64,000 nucleotides of DNA from Parasitella parasitica NRRL 2501 (Eukaryota; Fungi; Mucoromycota). Positions 3,514-13,934 of this stretch are shown here, piece by piece; the stretch's first letter is position 1; every line of letters starts with the position of its first letter. The notes beneath the pieces are model-generated. The model made no database searches. It was not told where the DNA came from and saw only the letters and a program-made list of their open reading frames with translations. Made by a program: the position numbers and the translations under genes. The stretch lies in contig MU619270.1 of assembly GCA_025201805.1 (NCBI GenBank), forward strand, positions 15,037 to 79,036. Direction: 5' to 3'.

Positions 3514-6500
3514 TTATTCAAAAAGGCTCGCTTTGATGTAGGTAGATGTGCTCTCTGTTCCATCCAAGGGTAAATCAAAAAAGAGCTTTCTGGCCAACTC
3601 AACATGCTGCTGATAGTCAGATCCGTTTCCGAATACAGGCCCACCTCGTTCGATGCTTGATTTACTGAGGATGATCCATTTGACCCAAAACTTTTCAATG
3701 GCTCGATTGATGATCACTGGCAGATCGTACCAAGCATTTTGCTTCTTGTTTTCTTGCTGATAGATTATGGACAGTACCTCGACAGCCACTTGACGTTCGG
3801 CTGGATTAGTAAACCATCCTAAAAATGATTCTACGGCCAACGCAAAATTAAATTCTTCAGGCGTCTTTTCCAAAACGATAGGATCTCTTGGTAAAGTATG
3901 GTTCCTGATGCAAAGGCCTTTAGATTGGTCGAGAATTGACCACACTTGAGGGAAAAAGTCGCAAGAGGGGACTCTATTGAGCGCACCGTCGTTTTTGCGA
4001 CGACGCAGCCAACGACCGTTGGAGTTGGGAAATAGAATGTGTATGTTTTCTAGTGTGATTTGTGCGGTTTGGCTGTTTTCTGTCTCGCTCTCGAGAGTGA
4101 AAGTCTTTTCAATCAATTCTGTAGGTCCGTCTTTGGATGACTGATGGGCTTCTAAAATATGCTCAACATCACCTAATATCGGTATTGTTAGCATGCACAC
4201 ATTCTGCTTAAAATGATCACGCGAATGTTCCTCACCTTTTTCGCCTATGAAAACATAGGAGTCTCGGTATTGTACACGATTAATTTTGGTGCTTCCCAGT
4301 TGCTGCAATGTAGCAATAGCTCCCTCGGTTAAGTTTTCAATGAACTCGTCTTTCGATGCGATAACAATGACCATTCCATCTGCAATCCAGTGGATAAACT
4401 GAACAAACGCCTGGCTTTCTTCTGTAGAAATGTGCGTATCGAATGAAGCACGCTCTAAAATGATGTTTTGGCTGCGATCAATTGCCCACACATGAATGCC
4501 GCGTGAGATTGCTTCCATAACGGTGCCATTGATTTCAACCTTGGCAAAATTACCGGAAAAGTACCCACCTGATTGTGCTTTGATAGACAGGCTATTCTGG
4601 TTATCTGAAATAAGTGGTATATAGGCATTATCTGTGGATTCCTGTTTTTTATCGCTAATGAAAAGGGTGTTGTTTGTGGACAGCATTAAGAATCCTCCAG
4701 GACGATCTCGTACCACCAGGTTATTCATACGACAAAGATGAGGGCCAGACAAAACAGTAAAAAGCAACGATTCCAACTCAAATGGAGAGAGCTGCATCAA
4801 ATGTTCAACTGATTCTTCTTCGTCGCTGTTGTTGACGCGGCTGATTTCTTCTCTCAGCGCGATGATAATGTAGTGCGTTCTCAAGCGAAGGATACCCTCA
4901 AACATGTGTGGGTGTGTACGAATGAGGTTACCCAAGTAAATAATGATTTCTTGTACGACAGGACCTTCACGCACATCATCCGTACTATAAAGAAACATTG
5001 ATTTGGTTAATAGATTGGAACAATGGTGGAATACGACAGCAATAGCATACCAGTGCTCAGTAATCATTTTATTCAGAGTATCCGGCGCAACAGGCATGGA
5101 AATCAGATATTCTTGAGGACCTGATCCAATACTAACTTGCTTTTGCCTAATAACCAGATCTGTGATGTTAATAGTAAGAGAAGGGACATTCTTGTGCAAC
5201 AATCCAGCCGCCTGTCTTGCAATGGACCAGTATTTGGACTTTTTAGACTTCAGATATACTTCTTCAATAAGATCCAAGATGGTAGATTCAAGTGCTTCGA
5301 CGTAATAAGTCATAGGTCTACAAGATACCATGTATTGAAGTAAATCTATGCATGCAATTGATATTAGAAACTCTGTATCCAAGTTCGAAGCAACACAAGA
5401 CTAACCTATTTGGTCATACAAGTTTACAGAGGCACCGAGACTTTCAACAGCCTGATTAAATTGCGACGAATCGCCCAACGTAAGAGAAAGCATCTCATGA
5501 GGAGAGCTTGACTGGTCAGTACCTTCTTTTGGCACGCTTCCAGTCTTGTTGGTAGTGGATGCAGGTGTAAATATGCCTGATTTTGGCGACTCGACCTTTG
5601 CTGCTTGCTTATTTACTTCATGACTCTTCAACTTGAACTGCTGTTGTTCAGAACTTGCTTTTAGTTCACTAAGAGCAGTAACTAATTCCTCAAAGTAGCT
5701 CTCGCCATGTAACTTATCCAATGGAGACGCCAAGGATTTACCGTAGAAGGTTGTATTTCTACGCTTTGGTGTTCTACCGCCACTCATTGATCCAGCACCA
5801 CCAGGAGTGCGATGGCCGGGAGTACTAGCTTGAGTTTTGGATTCATTGTACCCTAGCTTCTTTTTGTGCGTTCTGGATGCATGAGCAACACGTAAAATCC
5901 GTTTCCAATTAACTTCAGGCTTATTAATCAAGAAATCCAATGATTGAATGTTGCTTGTGTTGATCGTTTCTGCCAATCTACATAGTTTGATGCGCACCTC
6001 ACCTTCACAAGCGTAGCCGCCACGGAGATTAGTAAAGAAGTTGAGCAGGTTCTTTTTAGATGCATCGGCCGAATTAGATATCAGAATGTTGTTATTCTGC
6101 TTTGTTGTGCCTAAAAGGCTATGCGACAGCAAGACAACCATAGTAGGACGGCCGGGATAGTACCAATTCTTTTTGGTAAAAGTCAGCTCGTTTTCAAATT
6201 CGGATACCAAGTAGTCTGGATCAGCGTTGATATAGAATTCGTTATTGTCCATGAAATGAGGAGTGAATGCATATATCTGTCCTTGGATTCTGTAAAAACT
6301 AGATGTACCCAAGACACCAATAGGTCTGTAGATGTGTTGGGGTCAGTCTCAAATTGAAACATGCGTATATATATATATATATATATTATTGTTGCTATTG
6401 TTATTTTTACCTTTTGGGTCGACCTGTCATTTCCATTTTACTATTAAACCCTAACCCACCATAGACATCCACTAATGCTTGAGGTGGCAAGACAGTCGTT

Positions 6501-8388
6501 GTGGCTGAAATCTGATCTAATGTTTGCGTTTCAAGGCCATAAGTCGATAGTGCAGTTTGAAGTTGTTGATCCTCAGACAGCAGTACAATCTGAATCATGG
6601 TATCCTTAATCATCTTGGTACTGCAGAATCGACGACCGAGTGGATCGACTTCTGAAGGGCTCAGTAGATCTTCGGTAATTAGGCTACCTAAAAAGTATAA
6701 TGACAATGCCCATACTAAAGGTACGTTCTCATTGGGTACACGTTTTTGTGAATGAGGGTTTTCTTTTTCGGCTTGAATGCTTTCAGCAGGTACATAGTAC
6801 AATTCGGGTAAAAGAGGGATATGAATGGATGCATTCTCTTCATCGTCCTCTTCATCTTCGTGATCAGTGTCATCATTAATGTGATTTAACGGGATTGATT
6901 CTGAACGAGTGTGATTATTAGTGTTGCAAGTAGAAAAGCTGGATTCGCTAGACATTGTAGCAGAATCGACAATCAGAGGCTCTAACTTCTTTCTATAGTT
7001 TTCAGCCTGCTCGAGGTCTCCGGTAAACAGGCCCTCTAATACCATATACGTAAAGAACAATGGCCATTCCGATTCAATATCCTCAAACACCTTCAATTCG
7101 TTGGCATCGTAATACAAACGCGATGTATCCTCAACTGTTGTTTGATGTCCGTCTCTTAAAAACCGCTTCATACCGTATTTTCCCTCTAATTTTTTGATGG
7201 CTTCTTTTCGCGTGCGCTGAATCAATTCTGGGTCATCAACCGCAAATGCCGGAAATCCGATGATAGATAGCACTGATCCATCAATCTCCTTGGAATTGGA
7301 CTCTCGTGGCAAAAAACTGTGTAACGTGGTTGCATTTCGTGTCAGTTCATCTGGCAAGACATGGATAACCTGAAAATAAAATATAGATTTAGATTTTTAT
7401 ACCGTCTATCTCGTGTAACTGGATATTTACAGATGAAGGCCCACCGCGAGAACCAAACAGATTGACACCGTTGATAGCACGCAAAGCGGCGACCGCCATA
7501 CCAATAGAAGAGGAATTGAGCTCGGGTTGACCATGGTTGATCTTGTTGCCTCTTTCCCAAATTCCGTAATCAGGGGTACGATACGCACCTGAGAGCAAGT
7601 TTTTAGTAGTTTGCTGGGGCGGGGGGATTGCATAACACAACTTACGTTCAATGTAAAATACAAGATTTTGCACAAAATCGACTTCGTCTTGAGAGTATAT
7701 GATATTTAACCCTCCCGATGTCATATCGGCCAACGCCAGCAAGAAAAAACTGGTGGCATCGATTTGCAGATGTCCCCATTCAAAATCACCTACTACAGTC
7801 TCACCTGTTTGCGTATTGTATTTGGCGTGAAGCGAGTGTTCCAACGATTGAGTCTGTTTAAACTTTTCAACTTTGGCAGACTGACGCATCATTGAGAACA
7901 ACAAGCCCCTCATGAGTTTGACCACAGAGTACTGGAGCTCAACTACACAATGTGATGCATTCAGTCAAATTACGCACTAGCGTTTTCTGAGTAAAAGAAA
8001 GAAAAACACGCTTACAAGCTCTTCCAGTGTTATCATCTAATCTCTTGTATGCCAAAGCTAAGCCGTAAACAGCATATATAGAGTAGACGTTGTCTCTAGC
8101 GCATTTGAAATTCACGATTTAGATAAGACCTCCCAAAAATTTGCGTATGTATAATACTTACCTAACCCAAGCATCTGTATAGTCTCCATGACTCTATACA
8201 TGCAAACTGTGTTATCATTACTCTTTCTTGATGCTCCCTTCTTCTTTTTTTTTTATACATACCGTGATGGCTGTAGAGGCAGGCATTAAACCGCTCGAGG
8301 CATTTTGTTTTGCAATAATAGTTTTATTGATTACTTTATAGTAATAGTCGAGTCTATTCAGCGTATGTTTTTTGGATGATATAGTCAT
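3514..8388 (-). CDS. Phosphorylase b kinase regulatory subunit alpha/beta-like protein (GH15-like N-terminus) with inserted ILEI/GG-type domain
   Basis: Spliced motifs [68 protein letters not shown] and [15 protein letters not shown] match PHKA/PHKB. About 9 introns, three of them in-frame within the ORF track. Confidence 0.92.
6367..6386. repeat. (TA)n microsatellite in a PhK-like gene intron
   Basis: Seen directly. Confidence 0.9.
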
Positions 8389-9928
8389 TTTTCCTATGTG
8401 TATACAAAGACGAGAAAAAGAGGACAACTGAAAAAAAGACGGGTCAATATTGCTCATCTTCATGATCCCGTTTTATATTGATGCGGAGATGTCCTGAAAA
8501 TTTATTGGTACTTTTGGAGACAAAAAGCGGGGTTGCTTAGGGCATTTGTTAGAGTCGTAAACAATCATGTAAGAAATGGTTAAAAACGATGATCACAAGG
8601 GGTGATGCCTGAGATAAACGTATAATGCAAAACATCATTTTCCAGCAAAAAAAAAAAAAAAAAAAGAATAATGTACAGCATTAGAATGTAACGGAATGTC
8701 TCCCTCGAGCATGCATTTTGATCATATTTCACTGATAAGACGACGACAAAAGATACCTAATTGCAATCGTATTGAACATTGTTTGTGCAGTTCCATGTGT
8801 CATGTGCATGTATTCCGTCTGATAGATTTTTAAGGTTTTTGTTCCTGAAAGTTGGTGTTTACATCTATATTTATTCGAGCACACGTTACATACTAATGAT
8901 GTTTGTATGTGTGACATTAATGCGAAAACTGAGTATTTATGTATTGTTAGTAACTAGACATTGTACCTAGAAATTATAATTTACTTGAACAAAGTGAGTA
9001 AGAGGGAAATGTGAAACTGGAGAAAACCCACCGACTATAACTACTTGATCTGGTAAACGTCAGTCGATAACAAAAATTGCTAAACCTGTAATGTTGATGG
9101 CGTGTGCTCACAAGAAAAAATAAGACGCAAAGTGTTCAAAATCTTTGCGAGAAAGCAGAAGAATTTTAGCACAAGAAGGCTCTATACAAGTCTCAGATAT
9201 TTAAGACTGGAAATTGACACTCTCCAAGACTCAAATAACAGCATGAGTATTATGATATAGTGGCAAAAATTATCAGATTTATCTGGATACACCATTACTT
9301 GCATTCCTATCATGCTGTACCATTTGACTCTCGGCTAGAGCAGAATAAGTAGCAAGGAACTGTGTAATCTATCCAAAGAAGATGATCATGAGTAAAAACA
9401 CAATAGATTCAAAATAAATCTTCCCAAAGCCGAGTTTTTTTTTTACTATAAGGCCAAAATCGGGTTGAAAAAAAAATTCGATTTGCATAAAAATGAATCT
9501 AAGATCAACTCAATTTGTTGGAACATTTTTGAACAGCCAGAACACCGCGGTTCTGAAATAAAGTGGTCTCCGAAAGAACTAATACTTATTATCTTATAAT
9601 AATACTTACTTTGAATCAAGTGCAACAGGCACGTAAAAGGTGTTCAGGCAATGTTTCAAAATTGAGCGGAAAAGAAGAAAAGTGACATTAGGGACACAAA
9701 GATTTTGGGGAATACCAGCTTCTGAAGCAGCTTCAAATTGACGAGCATTTCAAAAAGAAAATACTAATCCAAATACTTATGAGCTGATTGTCAGACATGC
9801 AAAAACATACTTGAAAAACTACAAAATTTATTAGAGCTTTATATAAACTAGTTGCTTTCACACCGCAAATGCTTATTGTTAAAAAGTGATTTTAATAAGC
9901 AAAAAGGCCCAGAGCGGATCTTAAATCA

Positions 9929-11167
9929 CCAACAGGCAGCCTGCTCCATTTTTCTTCTATTTTGCCATTTTCAGAAATAAAATCTTCTTTCAAGAATATT
10001 TGTAGACTCTAATGCATATTTAACACCCAGAAGTGTAATAACATAGAACATGGAGTTGATTGTGCTCTATTCAATGGTAAAGTTTGTTTTATGATTTCAA
10101 CAAGAAATTGCATTGGTATTTCTGATAAATTGGATTTTCAGTGTATCAAAGAAAGTCAAAAATTTTGGCTTGAATTCTGCAAATAAACACTACCATTGTA
10201 TAGACACATTATTTTGGAACAAATACTTCTAATGTATACCATAGTGAAAAGTTTCGTCTTTTGGTTCAAAAATTGGATTTTGTCAAAAACGAGTTTTTAG
10301 ACGAGGTACCATAAGGCCAAAATTGAGTTGAAAAAAGAAGTTCCCAAAAAGCTGTCAATTTACATCANNNNNNNNNNNNNNNNNNNNNNNNNNNNNNNNN
10401 NNNNNNNNNNNNNNNNNNNNNNNNNNNNNNNNNNNNNNNNNNNNNNNNNNNNNNNNNNNNNNNNNNNNNNNNNNNNNNNNNNNNNNNNNNNNNNNNNNNN
10501 NNNNNNNNNNNNNNNNNNNNNNNNNNNNNNNNNNNNNNNNNNNNNNNNNNNNNNNNNNNNNNNNNNNNNNNNNNNNNNNNNNNNNNNNNNNNNNNNNNNN
10601 NNNNNNNNNNNNNNNNNNNNNNNNNNNNNNNNNNNNNNNNNNNNNNNNNNNNNNNNNNNNNNNNNNNNNNNNNNNNNNNNNNNNNNNNNNNNNNNNNNNN
10701 NNNNNNNNNNNNNNNNNNNNNNNNNNNTGATGTAAATTGACAGCTTTTTGGGAACTTCTTTTTTCAACTCAATTTTGGCCTTATGGTACCTCGTCTAAAA
10801 ACTCGTTTTTGACAAAATCCAATTTTTGAACCAAAAAACGAAACTTTTCACTATGGTATACATTAGAAGTATTTGTTCCAAAATAATGTGTCTATACAAT
10901 GGTAGTGTTTATTTGCAGAATTCAAGCCAAAATTTTTGACTTTTCTTTGATACACTGAAAATCCAATTTATCAGAAATACCAATGCAATTTCTTGTTGAA
11001 ATCATAAAACAAACTTTACCATTGAATAGAGCACAATCAACTCCATGTTCTATGTTATTACACTTCTGGGTGTTAAATATGCATTAGAGTCTACAAATAT
11101 TCTTGAAAGAAGATTTTATTTCTGAAAATGGCAAAATAGAAGAAAAATGGAGCAGGCTGCCTGTTGG
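9929..11167. repeat. ~440-bp near-perfect inverted repeat (9929-10367 / 10728-11167) flanking a 360-N gap; possible foldback/MITE-type element or assembly artefact
   Basis: The right arm is the reverse complement of the left. I noticed one substitution (10258 vs 10837) and one 1-bp indel (~10153 vs ~10942). Confidence 0.9.
10368..10727. other. Assembly gap (360 N)
   Basis: N run. Confidence 1.
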
Positions 11168-13934
11168 CGTTTAAAGGCCCGCTTACGCCCTGTTTTTCTA
11201 CGATTTTCCCTAATTCTATTTTCACTGAAGTTCAAGAAGCAACGAAGAATTAAAGACAAAAAATAAGTTAAAAACGGGGTATGGAAAGTTATTTTAATAC
11301 AGTTTTTTGAAAGTTCTCCTAAAGATTTGGGTTATTTTAACTCTGGATAGTGAATTGTCTGGATTTGCTAAATGGCAATTATTAACAGTGGCAGTCGCAA
11401 GTTTAAGCAAAGTAATATATGCGTATTATATCAGTCCAGTGGTTGATAGTATGATACATATGATATAATAACAAACCATACTTAAAATTAAATAAGTAAA
11501 ACGCTGTGTATTTCGTTCTCTTCGATACAATACATGCTACAACCGATGAGATCAGGAAGTCAATTATGAATGACATTTATACCATATCTCATTTTAAACA
11601 AAATGTCTCGACTGCTTTTGCAACGACTGTCGCATGATCATGCGTTCAACATGTCGACAAGATCTAAGATGCGGCACGAAGTTTATCTAAAAATACCAAT
11701 TTCGCTCTGTCACAATACTCTGTAGTAGGCAACCTCGTACAATATCTTGCACTTTTGTGCTTAAACATGAAGCGTTCAGCCCTGTCTAGTTTTATTCGTG
11801 TATTGAAGGAATTATCGTTTACAACAGTTATATATGACTAAATGATGTATTTTGTTAGATGAAGACGCGTAGCATTTAAGACATGCGTCAGACTTGAAAG
11901 ATAATCTTTGCGCTTATCGAAAGTCCAACAGACTGATTGAACATATTAGGGCGACTCAGATCTATGTCAAGCATATGTGCTCCAAAAAAAGAAAAAGAAA
12001 AAAAGAATATGGTGTCAGCAGTAGTTGAAAAGACAATGAAAGCAAGGCATGCTTTGTCGCATGATGATAGATTTTTAGTGTCTTGACTTGGAAGGCCAAC
12101 ATAGACCTATTCAATCCTACCCAAACTTACTTGGCATTTTAGAGTATTTAACCAAGAGAGTGAAAAAAAAAAAAAAAAAAAAAAAAAAATACCCAGTTTT
12201 ATAGCAAGGATCGATGTTTTTTGTTGTTGATGTAGATAAGAATGCTAATGAGGTTGGAGAATGAGCGTGACATATGCTGGCTTCCACTCTCTTTCATATT
12301 TTGATGCCTGGAAAATAAAAGCACGCTTTTATTTGCATAAATATCAAGTGGATATATCCTGTTCGATTTTTTATGTACTGCAGAGAGCATAATCATTGCA
12401 ACAACCAGCATCCTTTGATGCATTGATGTATTAGAGAACAATGAAATCGAACGATCTACAAAGGGCTATGTTTGTAAACAAACTCCGGATACTGAGCGAT
12501 TTTGACGTGTTTTTAGTAGAGTAAAGCAGCTTTGACTCCTAAAAAAAATTGTCCACGAAGTAATCCTATTAGCATTCATACTTCATGGCGGCCTGGTTCT
12601 CTCATTGCTGATAATTTGTGAAAGGCGCACGTTTAAGTCTAAAATGGTAGTATATGATCCAGGAGTGAAACACACGAGTGACAAAATAACAAGTGAATGT
12701 AGTGATGAATCGTATGTAGACTTGATTGGTGACAATGGTGTCACTTTTATTACACTTTGATATCATGCCTAGTAATGATAGATTTTAATAACTTACTCCG
12801 GATGCGAAAATAATAGTTTTTTATTCTATATGACACTTCTAACGATTTATTCTTGGTTCGATAATATGAAAGATAAAACTTTTGTTTACTTCTTTCAGCA
12901 TTTCTCAAATGTTTAGCGTACAACATTACGCGACAATTGTATCACAATAGACGGTAGTGGTGCAGTAGATCAACTTTTGTGCAACATGTAGAGAAGCATA
13001 AGGATCTGAATTATTTGGCAAGATGCAGTTAAATCTGTTGAATTTCAATTTTTCAACGTAAGCTCTTTTACATACAACCAGATTCCTGCTATAATATAAA
13101 ATATACGCATAGTTCTTACCGGTGACCGGAGCACATGCCAACAAAGGAGAAAACGTTCGATTCAGTATGATAAGACAAAAATTTTGGTTGCACAAATAAT
13201 TGCATCTACCTCACCACACTCTCATGAATTAATGCAGCTCAAATGCATGTAGTGTATAAGACAACAAATAAAGAAGTGTATATAATAGTATACCCTTAAA
13301 AAAAAAAAGTGATGTTAGTTTGTATGCTTCATTCTCATCATGCACTATTAAATGCGAATCGATGAATTAGACATCCACGAATTCGCGATATTCTTTATTG
13401 ATCAAGCAGTAACAGTGTCACTGGTGTTCAACAGCAGCAGGCGTTTTCTCTTGAAAAAAAAAAACGGCTACAAGGATCGATTGATCTTTTTGGACAACAT
13501 GAACAACTTAACCACAAGGGAACAACCTTTTTATGTATAAAAATGTGCCCGGATGCGGCCTTTCTGAGGTTGCAAAACTTTACAAAATGCCAGCGTACGA
13601 CGTTACACTGCAAAATGTTGCTGTGCATATACTATCATCCGCTATCATTTACGTTTAGTGATTTACTGTCTATATACTGGTGTTTCTCTAGCTTTCTTTC
13701 AAAATTATTTGAACAGCAGGACAATGTGAATAGTTTTACAAGCTATCTCATGCTTTTCTAATCATGACGGCATTAGAATACAATGCATCAGATAGTTTAA
13801 TTTAAAAAAGCAATTGTTACACTGTTTTCAAAAATCGCACTAGAGTCGCCTATTGAAAGGAGGCATGTTTCTTTTGTATAAATTATGTATCATTTTTGTT
13901 GGGTCTCTTCTTTCTTTTTCTTTTTTCAACAAAG

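Follow-up and report, generated by a model that had tools for sequence, protein, structure and literature searches.

The window, a 64,000-nt stretch of Parasitella DNA, carries a PhK alpha-like gene at 3514-8388 on the minus strand (10 exons, 1,424 codons; ATG at 8388-8386, stop at 3516-3514). A spliced RNA contig of 4,328 nt (run X1) matches the gene with 0 mismatches, every joint being CT..AC on the plus strand, and an alignment shows the public ortholog P0032 to be colinear with the gene. The RNA contig places the exons as follows.

8263-8388, minus strand: exon 1, with the 5' UTR reaching out to 8415
8162-8193, minus strand: exon 2
8016-8095, minus strand: exon 3
~7646-7942, minus strand: exon 4
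~7431-7588, minus strand: exon 5
6417-~7369, minus strand: exon 6
5406-6327, minus strand: exon 7
5051-5345, minus strand: exon 8
4236-4984, minus strand: exon 9
3514-4172, minus strand: exon 10

Lacking a stop codon and keeping the frame, the intron at 4173-4235 is translated as coding sequence by ORF finders, and since they also read through a second in-frame intron, the raw ORF differs from the true protein. The minus-strand ORF at 3514-5382 holds the ILEI peptide quoted in the initial annotation as well as the KPBB_C match. Profile and PDB searches were done exon by exon, and also with P0032 and an intron-free paralog frame. The encoded regions, the sites discussed below, and the two in-frame introns are located as follows.

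6417-8388, minus strand: D1 region, GH15 (glucoamylase-like), encoded by exons 1-6; Pfam PF00723 with 119 and 29 bits
7554-7556, minus strand: Glu codon in GIWERG, equivalent of the human alpha catalytic Glu185 (alignment to 8jfk_M)
6803-6805, minus strand: Glu codon in LLPELY, equivalent of the human alpha catalytic Glu371 (alignment to 8jfk_M)
4741-5349, minus strand: D4-like helical region upstream of the insert; aligns to PHKA1 802-966 and PHKB 758-915
4985-5050, minus strand: second in-frame intron, within the D4-like region; the RNA joint skips 66 nt
4597-4740, minus strand: variable linker from the D4-like region (which ends ...FTVLSG) to ILEI; low conservation, pLDDT below 50
4096-4596, minus strand: ILEI/PANDER (GG, FAM3-fold) domain of ~146 residues, roughly 1085-1230 of the 1,424-residue protein, split by the intron at 4173-4235; identified by Pfam, model, and Foldseek
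4501-4503, minus strand: Arg codon (ORF R294, in RGIHVW), aligned to POMGnT1 Arg129
4348-4350, minus strand: Asp codon (ORF D345, in SKDEF), aligned to POMGnT1 Asp179
4264-4266, minus strand: Arg codon (ORF R373, in YRDSY), aligned to POMGnT1 Arg207
4173-4235, minus strand: intron inside the ILEI domain, 63 nt, phase 1, GT..AG, with a ctaac branch site; the RNA joint skips 63 nt
4018-4095, minus strand: variable linker from ILEI to D5, of variable length, pLDDT 48-61
3517-4017, minus strand: D5/KPBB_C; Pfam PF19292 with 77 bits; aligns to PHKA1 1050-1134 and PHKB 913-1008

The intron within the ILEI domain had been proposed at ~4235-4173 and is borne out: it is in frame, has GT..AG ends and a branch site, and is spliced out in the RNA contig, and its 21 read-through residues are missing from both a paralog in the same genome and P0032. 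The ILEI exons are retained in this contig and only introns, the 63-nt one included, are removed, which answers the concern raised in the initial annotation that the ILEI segment itself might be spliced out.

The gene product is a soluble, alpha-like homolog of PhK regulatory subunits and consists of D1, a D4-like region, an ILEI domain, and D5. GH15 and KPBB_C profiles and alignments to human PHKA1 and PHKB agree with the earlier assignment of the host as PhK alpha/beta-like, and the two human proteins are the sole strong matches in the PDB for each exon tested. D1 with its Glu pair, the D4-like region, and D5/KPBB_C are colinear with those of animal PhK alpha (PHKA1; 8jfk, 8jfl, and 8z5m), and the Parasitella protein scores higher against alpha than against beta (179 vs. 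143 bits and 249 vs. 204 bits). Both Glu of the GH15 catalytic pair are present in the alignment to human alpha, in which Glu185 and Glu371 have been named as that pair (PMC10978961). Foldseek matches the D5 region to 8xyb_A and to the alpha and beta chains of 8jfk/8jfl; in human alpha, D5 binds the autoinhibitory domain of gamma (PMC10978961).

The ILEI domain follows the D4-like helical region and precedes D5 (KPBB_C), and the D4-D5 junction carries an insertion in animal alpha also. Human PHKA1 aligns as far as residue 966 and again from residue 1050, and the phosphosites at 972-1042 fall inside this gap, confirming that the fungal insertion is at the multiphosphorylation segment of animal alpha. 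The loop itself (Ser972-1042) is absent, and linkers and the ILEI domain fill its site. Whereas the animal insert is a disordered phospho-loop of ~84 residues, the fungal insert spans ~236 residues and includes a folded ILEI domain. In human beta nothing interrupts the junction, as query residue 211 aligns to beta 915 and query residue 448 to beta 913.

Profile and predicted fold identify the inserted domain consistently. Pfam ILEI (PF15711; cut-off of 27 bits) matches ORF residues 294-383 (window ~4234-4503) with 86.8 bits and an E value of 1.4e-24, covering profile positions 1-89 of 90, and a six-frame scan of the genome with this profile scores 91.1 bits at the identical place. In a PDB sequence search, the ILEI residues match the POMGnT1 stem (E = 6e-11), FAM3C, TMEM2, FAM3A, and FAM3B. 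The sequence modeled with AlphaFold was that of the ortholog (P0032:1031-1389), ~93% identical to the window protein; its residues 21-166, which map to window 4596-4096, have pLDDT values above 90 and are predicted to adopt the three-layer beta-beta-alpha fold of FAM3B/C and the POMGnT1 stem. Foldseek matches of the modeled domain include, at probability 1.00, POMGnT1 stem 5ggl (TM 0.79, E = 6e-10) and FAM3C/B/A (TM 0.70-0.74; FAM3C alone also 0.70-0.74), and also TMEM2; a search of the ESM Atlas gave no usable match. The ILEI/GG assignment made at the outset is thus upheld, and the span then claimed, 4100-4593, is nearly identical to the fold-level domain at 4096-4596. The two-domain model of P0032 (ILEI and D5) has a pTM of 0.59, and the geometry between ILEI and D5 is not fixed by it.

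The stem of POMGnT1 (5ggj and 5ggl), a beta-GlcNAc binder, is the best structural match (TM 0.79-0.80, rmsd 2.3-2.5 Å, 27-28% identity), but POMGnT1 is a Golgi-lumenal glycosyltransferase, whereas the fungal host has no signal peptide, TM segment, or conserved Cys pair. FAM3A/B/C/D (ILEI, PANDER) belong to the identical Pfam family and share the fold, yet they are stand-alone secreted proteins of ~230 residues with 18-26% identity, and the fungal domain is internal to a 1,424-residue protein. CEMIP/KIAA1199 and TMEM2 (G8 and GG, hyaluronan-degrading) likewise have a GG domain of the ILEI family (TMEM2 was matched through 8c6i) but are secretory-pathway proteins distinct from PhK, whereas in fungi ILEI and the PhK subunit form a single chain. 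The second GG domain of CEMIP presumably lies in the C-terminal fragment reported to bind PHKB.

Without a signal peptide or TM segment, the protein is predicted to be cytosolic, as first proposed. Neither feature was found in the sequence, whose N-terminus is not signal-like and whose hydropathy over 19 residues peaks at 1.5, and no Cys pair that could form a disulfide in the ILEI domain is conserved across the aligned fungal sequences. The predicted topology thus departs from the extracellular or lumenal location that is typical of, though not defining for, the ILEI family. To our knowledge, every characterized ILEI/GG domain acts outside the cytosol, and we know of no earlier ILEI/FAM3-fold domain with a predicted cytosolic action. 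Unlike animal PhK alpha, the fungal protein also has no C-terminal CaaX: the window protein ends in ...KASLFE and its paralog in ...SNALHI. Among 134 PhK-like proteins longer than 1,100 residues, no fungal member has a CaaX end, and the nine with a CaaX-like end are of mollusc-type alpha, all CAVS (eight named oyster and one unnamed).

Three residues of the POMGnT1 stem, Arg129, Asp179, and Arg207, contact GlcNAc (PMC9802357), and their equivalents, assigned through a HMMER alignment to 5ggj with one constant offset of 86, are present in the Parasitella domain. All 26 diverse fungal sequences compared have this triad (R52/D103/R131 in alignment A1) unchanged. In vitro, FAM3C and FAM3A bound several sugars, GlcNAc among them, and the sole FAM3-like domain without in vitro sugar binding is missing Asp179 and Arg207 (PMC9802357). 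From this pattern of residues, we infer that the fungal ILEI domain may bind carbohydrate. Conservation of the triad may be partly structural because R/D/R is kept across most of the ILEI family.

Levels of conservation vary along the protein. Mean pairwise identity across fungi is 47% in ILEI, 32% with many gaps in the D4-ILEI linker, and 20% in the ILEI-D5 linker; the ILEI insert is under purifying selection, as its 47% versus 20-32% in the linkers indicates. D5 is the best-conserved part (56%), and W-L-R-R-R-x-N-D-G-x-x-N-R is nearly invariant in the fungal alignment.

The GH15+ILEI+KPBB_C architecture is found in 118 of 121 matches and is common to every early-diverging fungal phylum sampled. 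It also occurs in Rozella, Blastocladiella, Gonapodya, Spiromyces, Ramicandelaber, Linderina, Allomyces, Sanchytrium, and Conidiobolus. In all, it spans Rozella, Sanchytrium, Blastocladiomycota, chytrids, Zoopagomycota, and Mucoromycota. The expected occurrence in early-diverging fungi therefore holds and, with Rozella included, is wider than Mucoromycota and chytrids. Three chytrid gene models are without the domain, implying that ILEI is dispensable in some lineages or that these models are wrong. No Dikarya proteins are among the matches of the searches made here, and the homologs examined from human, oyster, Elysia, Exaiptasia, and Nostocales have no ILEI domain. The Nostocales GH15+KPBB_C proteins (~1,068 aa) are colinear over their full length, show 53% identity across the N-terminal 600 residues, and share the anchors LMQLSPFE... 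and ...NRVP, but have a linker of ~55 residues in place of the insert. We know of no PhK gamma in cyanobacteria with such homologs.

A tree of the fungal members (MAFFT and FastTree) follows the species tree, and the ILEI insert has come down vertically from the ancestor that the sampled fungi share. An old alpha/beta duplication in fungi was considered and rejected because paralogs are lineage-specific, grouping within Mucorales and within Mortierellaceae; the absence of an old alpha/beta split is a further difference from animal PhK alpha. The divergent metagenomic proteins P0195, P0156, P0183, and P0176 were likewise rejected as non-fungal or prokaryotic members, as the contigs that carry them appear eukaryotic and to have been broken up by prokaryotic gene callers. 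Those of their relatives that have names are fungi.

For glycogen phosphorylase, the substrate of PhK, two genes (PF00343) are present in the genome, each scoring more than 1,000 bits. Both N-termini are basic and Ser/Thr-bearing, read ...RPRRLSMPKLTRRLTNV..., and hold putative phosphorylation sites. No PhK gamma was recognized in a weak, motif-based search of the genome and a look at the 30 best Pkinase loci, and a PhK holoenzyme is therefore an assumption. The search used four degenerate DNA patterns for the motifs PPFWHRKQ, GYGxEVDxW, GTPxYLAPE, and LLxGxPPFW, which matched threonyl-tRNA synthetase, AGC kinases of the PKA and Sch9 types, and CaMKI-like kinases; the kinases seen with the patterns and at the 30 loci were CDK, PAK, PKA, MARK, CaMKI-like, and similar ones. 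A GT41 OGT-like enzyme is also encoded in the genome.

An insertion this widespread could in principle be an annotation or assembly artifact or a neutral segment without function, given that ORF finders read through two in-frame introns and that some chytrid models are without the domain. We reject both on RNA and conservation evidence and regard them as extremely improbable: a perfectly matching spliced transcript keeps the ILEI domain, the domain is at the identical site in every early-diverging phylum sampled with 47% identity versus 20% in the linker, and its fold is predicted with high confidence. The reading that we favor, at a probability of roughly 0.45, is that ILEI is a cytosolic carbohydrate-binding sensor or tether beside D5, the domain that in animals holds gamma. 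The domain would bind carbohydrate in the cytosol through its kept Arg/Asp/Arg triad, with glycogen or malto-oligosaccharide ends or a GlcNAc-type sugar as possible ligands. ILEI directly precedes D5, whose human alpha counterpart clamps the gamma kinase by its autoinhibitory segment, and a ligand bound there would either tether the complex to its polysaccharide or alter the hold of D5 on its partner. A dinoflagellate alpha-amylase accompanied by ILEI domains provides another glucan context for this reading, which the two glycogen phosphorylases also favor. In early fungi, sugar would then regulate at the hinge where animal alpha carries its phosphorylation loop.

Some of the same features can be read as those of an enzyme. 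In that case, the protein would be an active cytosolic GH15-type hydrolase with ILEI as a CBM-like substrate module and no role in kinase regulation. Retention of both Glu185/Glu371 equivalents, the flanking of enzymes by ILEI repeats elsewhere, and the Nostocales GH15+KPBB_C homologs, 53% identical over the first 600 residues and possibly enzymes themselves, point this way, as do the lack in fungal members of the CaaX farnesylation motif of the animal assembly and of a recognized gamma-like kinase in the genome. However, human alpha has the Glu pair and was inactive in vitro on maltose, isomaltose, and glycogen (PMC10978961), the search for gamma was motif-based and weak, and the best conservation being in D5 (56%) suggests a conserved partner surface. 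We consider a hydrolase rather doubtful. ILEI is unlikely to be instead a protein-protein module that docks on PhK domains or phosphorylase in cis or drives oligomerization. Under such a scheme, CEMIP-PHKB would be a split Rosetta-stone form of the fungal fusion: a C-terminal fragment, ~300 residues long, of CEMIP, which has two GG domains, reportedly pulled down PHKB, raised PYGB phosphorylation, and promoted glycogen breakdown (PMC4196182). A dimer of FAM3C (PDB 5lc4) and the absence from fungal members of the farnesyl groups that glue animal subunits are also consistent with it, but the CEMIP-PHKB result comes from one pull-down study, the secretory topology of CEMIP conflicts with the cytosolic one of PhK, and it is the sugar-contact residues that are invariant in the fungal domain. 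Extending the sensor or tether reading, the ILEI-PhK link could be both ancient and functional, with a cytosolic lectin that reads a sugar signal, such as glycogen chain ends or beta-GlcNAc (O-GlcNAc or chitin precursors), and gates glycogen breakdown without a phospho-loop, CEMIP-PHKB again being the split form; we consider this full version a long shot.

PhK is a textbook case of regulation by phosphorylation. In every early-diverging fungal phylum sampled, a folded lectin-type domain occupies the hinge at which animal alpha has its phospho-loop, pointing to a different, possibly sugar-based input into glycogen mobilization in these fungi. The claim that the fusion is undescribed stands in part. 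No paper describing an ILEI-PhK fusion was found and it seems to be undescribed in papers, but it is less than wholly new, given that more than 150 fungal proteins are already annotated with the three Pfam domains in public databases. The fusion gives an independent reason to revisit the reported CEMIP-PHKB interaction and, since Mucorales are genetically tractable, the idea is open to experiment. Animal ILEI members (FAM3 proteins, CEMIP, TMEM2, and POMGnT1) are medically important and mechanistically poorly understood, and the fungal domain may help define the basic activity of the family. Elsewhere in this family, ILEI repeats flank an alpha-amylase, a C25 peptidase, and other enzymes.

The last ORF of the PhK alpha-like gene encodes an ILEI domain (PF15711, 86.8 bits, E 1.4e-24, profile positions 1–89 of 90) and downstream of it KPBB_C (77 bits), and the upstream exons encode Glyco_hydro_15 (119 + 29 bits). 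In a search of PDB sequences, the flanks of this ORF match human PHKB and PHKA1, and its residues 286–395 match the stem domain of POMGnT1 (E 6e-11), FAM3C, TMEM2, FAM3A, and FAM3B. Window-gene searches were run per exon; where a continuous sequence was needed, we used P0032, the public Parasitella orthologue (∼93% identical to the window protein over aligned positions), or the intron-free frame of a paralogue (L003:4620–8243). The predicted fold is that of P0032, standing in for the spliced protein of the window. The AlphaFold model of P0032 residues 1031–1389, built from a 26-sequence alignment, has a mean pLDDT of 83 and exceeds 90 over the ILEI part. In Foldseek, the ILEI part matches the POMGnT1 stem best (5ggl/5ggj; TM 0.79–0.80 on target, rmsd 2.3–2.5 Å), followed by FAM3C, FAM3B, FAM3A, and TMEM2, while hits to the C-terminal part are human PhK alpha and beta chains, one of them the alpha piece in the gamma–delta subcomplex (8xyb). 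The initial annotation had placed an ILEI domain at 4100–4593, and both profile and predicted fold uphold it. Features of the gene are:

8388 to 3514, minus strand, PhK alpha-like gene with 10 exons
4985–5050, minus strand, in-frame intron of 66 nt without a stop codon
4596–4096, minus strand, fold-level ILEI domain, mapped to the window from the AlphaFold model of P0032
4173–4235, minus strand, in-frame intron of 63 nt without a stop codon

The gene is expressed. A 4,328-nt contig of the public sequencing run X1 aligns to it in ten pieces with no mismatches, and all stretches that it skips are CT..AC on the plus strand, hence GT..AG on the gene strand, so the run contains spliced RNA. The RNA label of X1 is only a guess; its RNA content is shown by the spliced contig, and such contigs give no expression level. 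From the first ATG within this contig at 8388 to the stop codon at 3516–3514, the coding length is 4,272 nt (1,424 codons). The intron proposed earlier at ∼4235–4173 is spliced out in the X1 contig. Because the 63- and 66-nt introns are both in frame and free of stops, the mechanical ORF 3514..5382 runs through them. If retained, they would insert 21 or 22 residues with the frame intact; the X1 contig represents the spliced form only.

The location of the ILEI domain in the PhK scaffold corresponds to a regulatory region of the animal alpha subunit. Human PhK subunits have five domains, of which D4 is homologous to D5; the gamma subunit is held by D5 of alpha, and beta dimerizes through its own D5 (PMC10978961). 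By sequence alignment, the fungal flanks abut in human beta (query 211 at beta 915, query 448 at beta 913) and are 84 residues apart in human alpha (966 and 1050). The gap at 966–1050 is the multiphosphorylation segment, as the initial annotation had proposed for the site of insertion, and contains the phosphosites Ser972, 985, 1007, 1018, 1020, 1023, 1030, and 1042; the segment is unseen in cryo-EM and adjoins a predicted calmodulin-binding region at 1046–1086 (PMC11950179). Flank alignments and the human domain layout therefore place the fungal ILEI domain, with linkers of ∼48 residues before and ∼26 after, in the D4–D5 hinge, directly before the partner-binding domain.

Across 26 fungal sequences from several phyla, mean pairwise identity is 47% in ILEI columns, 20–32% in the linkers, and 56% in the D5 core. 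Residues aligned to Arg129, Asp179, and Arg207 of POMGnT1 are invariant in all 26. In POMGnT1 these residues contact beta-GlcNAc; they are kept in FAM3 proteins and the worm Fam3L2 domain, and FAM3A, FAM3C, and Fam3L2 bind sugar in vitro, whereas in the nonbinding Fam3L1 domain Asp179 and Arg207 are not conserved (PMC9802357). No conserved Cys pair is present in the ILEI domain of the 26-sequence alignment, and inspection of the window protein found no signal-like N-terminus, TM-grade hydrophobic stretch, or CaaX end, a combination consistent with a reducing cytosol.

The best-supported reading is that the ILEI domain is a carbohydrate-binding module in a regulatory hinge, which would alter the action of D5 either by sensing a sugar or by tethering the complex to glycogen. 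For this reading, the domain's identity, site, expression, and conservation and its kept contact residues are shown, whereas sugar binding, the ligand, coupling to D5, and a kinase partner are inferred. Other genes noted elsewhere in the genome are:

C42:215619–219243 (L003:4620–8243), second PhK alpha-like gene, GH15–ILEI–KPBB_C; P0001 in NCBI, 1,447 residues
C80:11619–13760 (L006), glycogen phosphorylase, 881 residues
C21:113012–115165 (L007), glycogen phosphorylase, 891 residues
C26:153295–154755 (L008, L009), one GT41 OGT-like gene, frame of 1,421 residues, two matches of ∼190 bits

Both phosphorylases have an N-terminal extension (...RPRRLSMPKLTRRLTNV...) with two basic Ser/Thr sites resembling kinase targets. 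The GT41 gene, of OGT or SPY type, makes a cytosolic beta-GlcNAc signal conceivable in Parasitella. A weak search, with degenerate motif patterns and the 30 best kinase loci of the genome, found no PhK gamma gene.

With no PhK gamma gene recognized in that search, an active GH15 enzyme with ILEI as its binding module is a plausible alternative, favoured by an intact Glu pair and by cyanobacterial homologues. Both GH15 Glu residues equivalent to Glu185 and Glu371 of human alpha are retained, unlike in human beta, which has lost one of them. Cyanobacterial homologues have no known kinase partner. ILEI also accompanies other activities elsewhere: outside PhK, the fungal domain is most closely related to tandem ILEI repeats (31–39% identity; public proteins P0184 of Biecheleria cincta, P0197, P0123, P0128, and P0228 were compared), with three copies in a dinoflagellate alpha-amylase, two in C25 peptidases that are ∼1,900 residues long and end in a T9SS tail, and five or six in proteins with PI-PLC-X or acyltransferase domains; an RHS-repeat protein is also among them. 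A third reading is that ILEI is a protein–protein module. CEMIP has two GG domains, the second presumably within its C-terminal ∼300 residues. That C-terminal fragment is reported to have pulled down PHKB, and phosphorylase phosphorylation rose (Terashima et al., PMC4196182). If the two partners are fused in fungi and separate in humans, this would be a Rosetta-stone case.

The whole genome has two ILEI matches, both inside PhK-like genes. The C42 paralogue is 100% identical to an NCBI Parasitella protein; in the C-terminal half it shares 51% identity with the window gene, and its ILEI domain lacks an intron. A FastTree phylogeny of 36 full-length proteins agrees with the fungal species tree. 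Paralogue pairs fall within Mucorales and within Mortierellaceae, which speaks against an old alpha/beta split in the sampled fungi; the window gene and C42 paralogue are a duplication within Mucorales.

Two word-indexed searches found the GH15, ILEI, and KPBB_C architecture in 60 of 61 and 118 of 121 matches, spanning Mucorales, Umbelopsis, Endogonales, Mortierellomycotina, Basidiobolus, Entomophthora, and many chytrids. Exhaustive profile search and cluster look-ups extended it to Rozella, Blastocladiella, Gonapodya, Spiromyces, Ramicandelaber, Linderina, Sanchytrium, and Conidiobolus. A search from a divergent metagenomic member added Allomyces and returned mollusc and cnidarian PhK alpha and Nostocales homologues with GH15 and KPBB_C but without ILEI, these three groups being thin coverage outside fungi. 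No search returned a Dikarya protein; Glomeromycotina and nonfungal protists were outside the sampling. The distance between the two sequence anchors is 204–298 residues in ILEI-bearing fungi, 77–108 in mollusc alpha, 46–79 in Synchytrium and Geranomyces variabilis, and ∼55 (counted from sequence) in Anabaena. ILEI is absent from three chytrid gene models, those of Synchytrium (P0191), Gorgonomyces (P0114), and G. variabilis (P0282), whose congener G. michiganensis has the domain. Because both models placed in the tree, Synchytrium and Gorgonomyces, branch within chytrids that carry ILEI, and Gorgonomyces retains the last ILEI strand and tail (...AKDGPTEVIQ...), the three are secondary losses or model errors such as skipped exons. 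The pattern fits one gain of ILEI that predates the radiation of the fungi sampled, followed by vertical descent.

Our literature search found no paper joining PhK with ILEI, FAM3, or GG domains and none treating PhK in early-diverging fungi; among matches listed, papers naming these domains deal with CEMIP, TMEM2, or phage T4 or use "GG" in an unrelated sense. Public collections already carry precomputed matches of all three Pfam domains to these fungal proteins, so the fusion is visible to anyone browsing domain architectures.

Nostocales (Anabaena, Nostoc, Trichormus, Calothrix, Cylindrospermum, and others) have full-length, colinear PhK alpha/beta homologues of ∼1,068 residues with GH15 and KPBB_C and without ILEI (P0286–P0316 and similar; P0288 is from Anabaena cylindrica). 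Over the first ∼600 residues, they are 52–56% identical to fungal and oyster proteins, an identity so high that it suggests horizontal transfer between eukaryotes and cyanobacteria.

Elsewhere in the window, a run of N at ∼10367–10728 lies between mirror-image flanks, forming a large inverted repeat (∼9850–11260) around an assembly gap, with mirrored short ORFs beside it (e.g., 10266–10358 minus and 10737–10829 plus; 10009–10113 minus and 10983–11087 plus). The repeat may be an assembly artefact.
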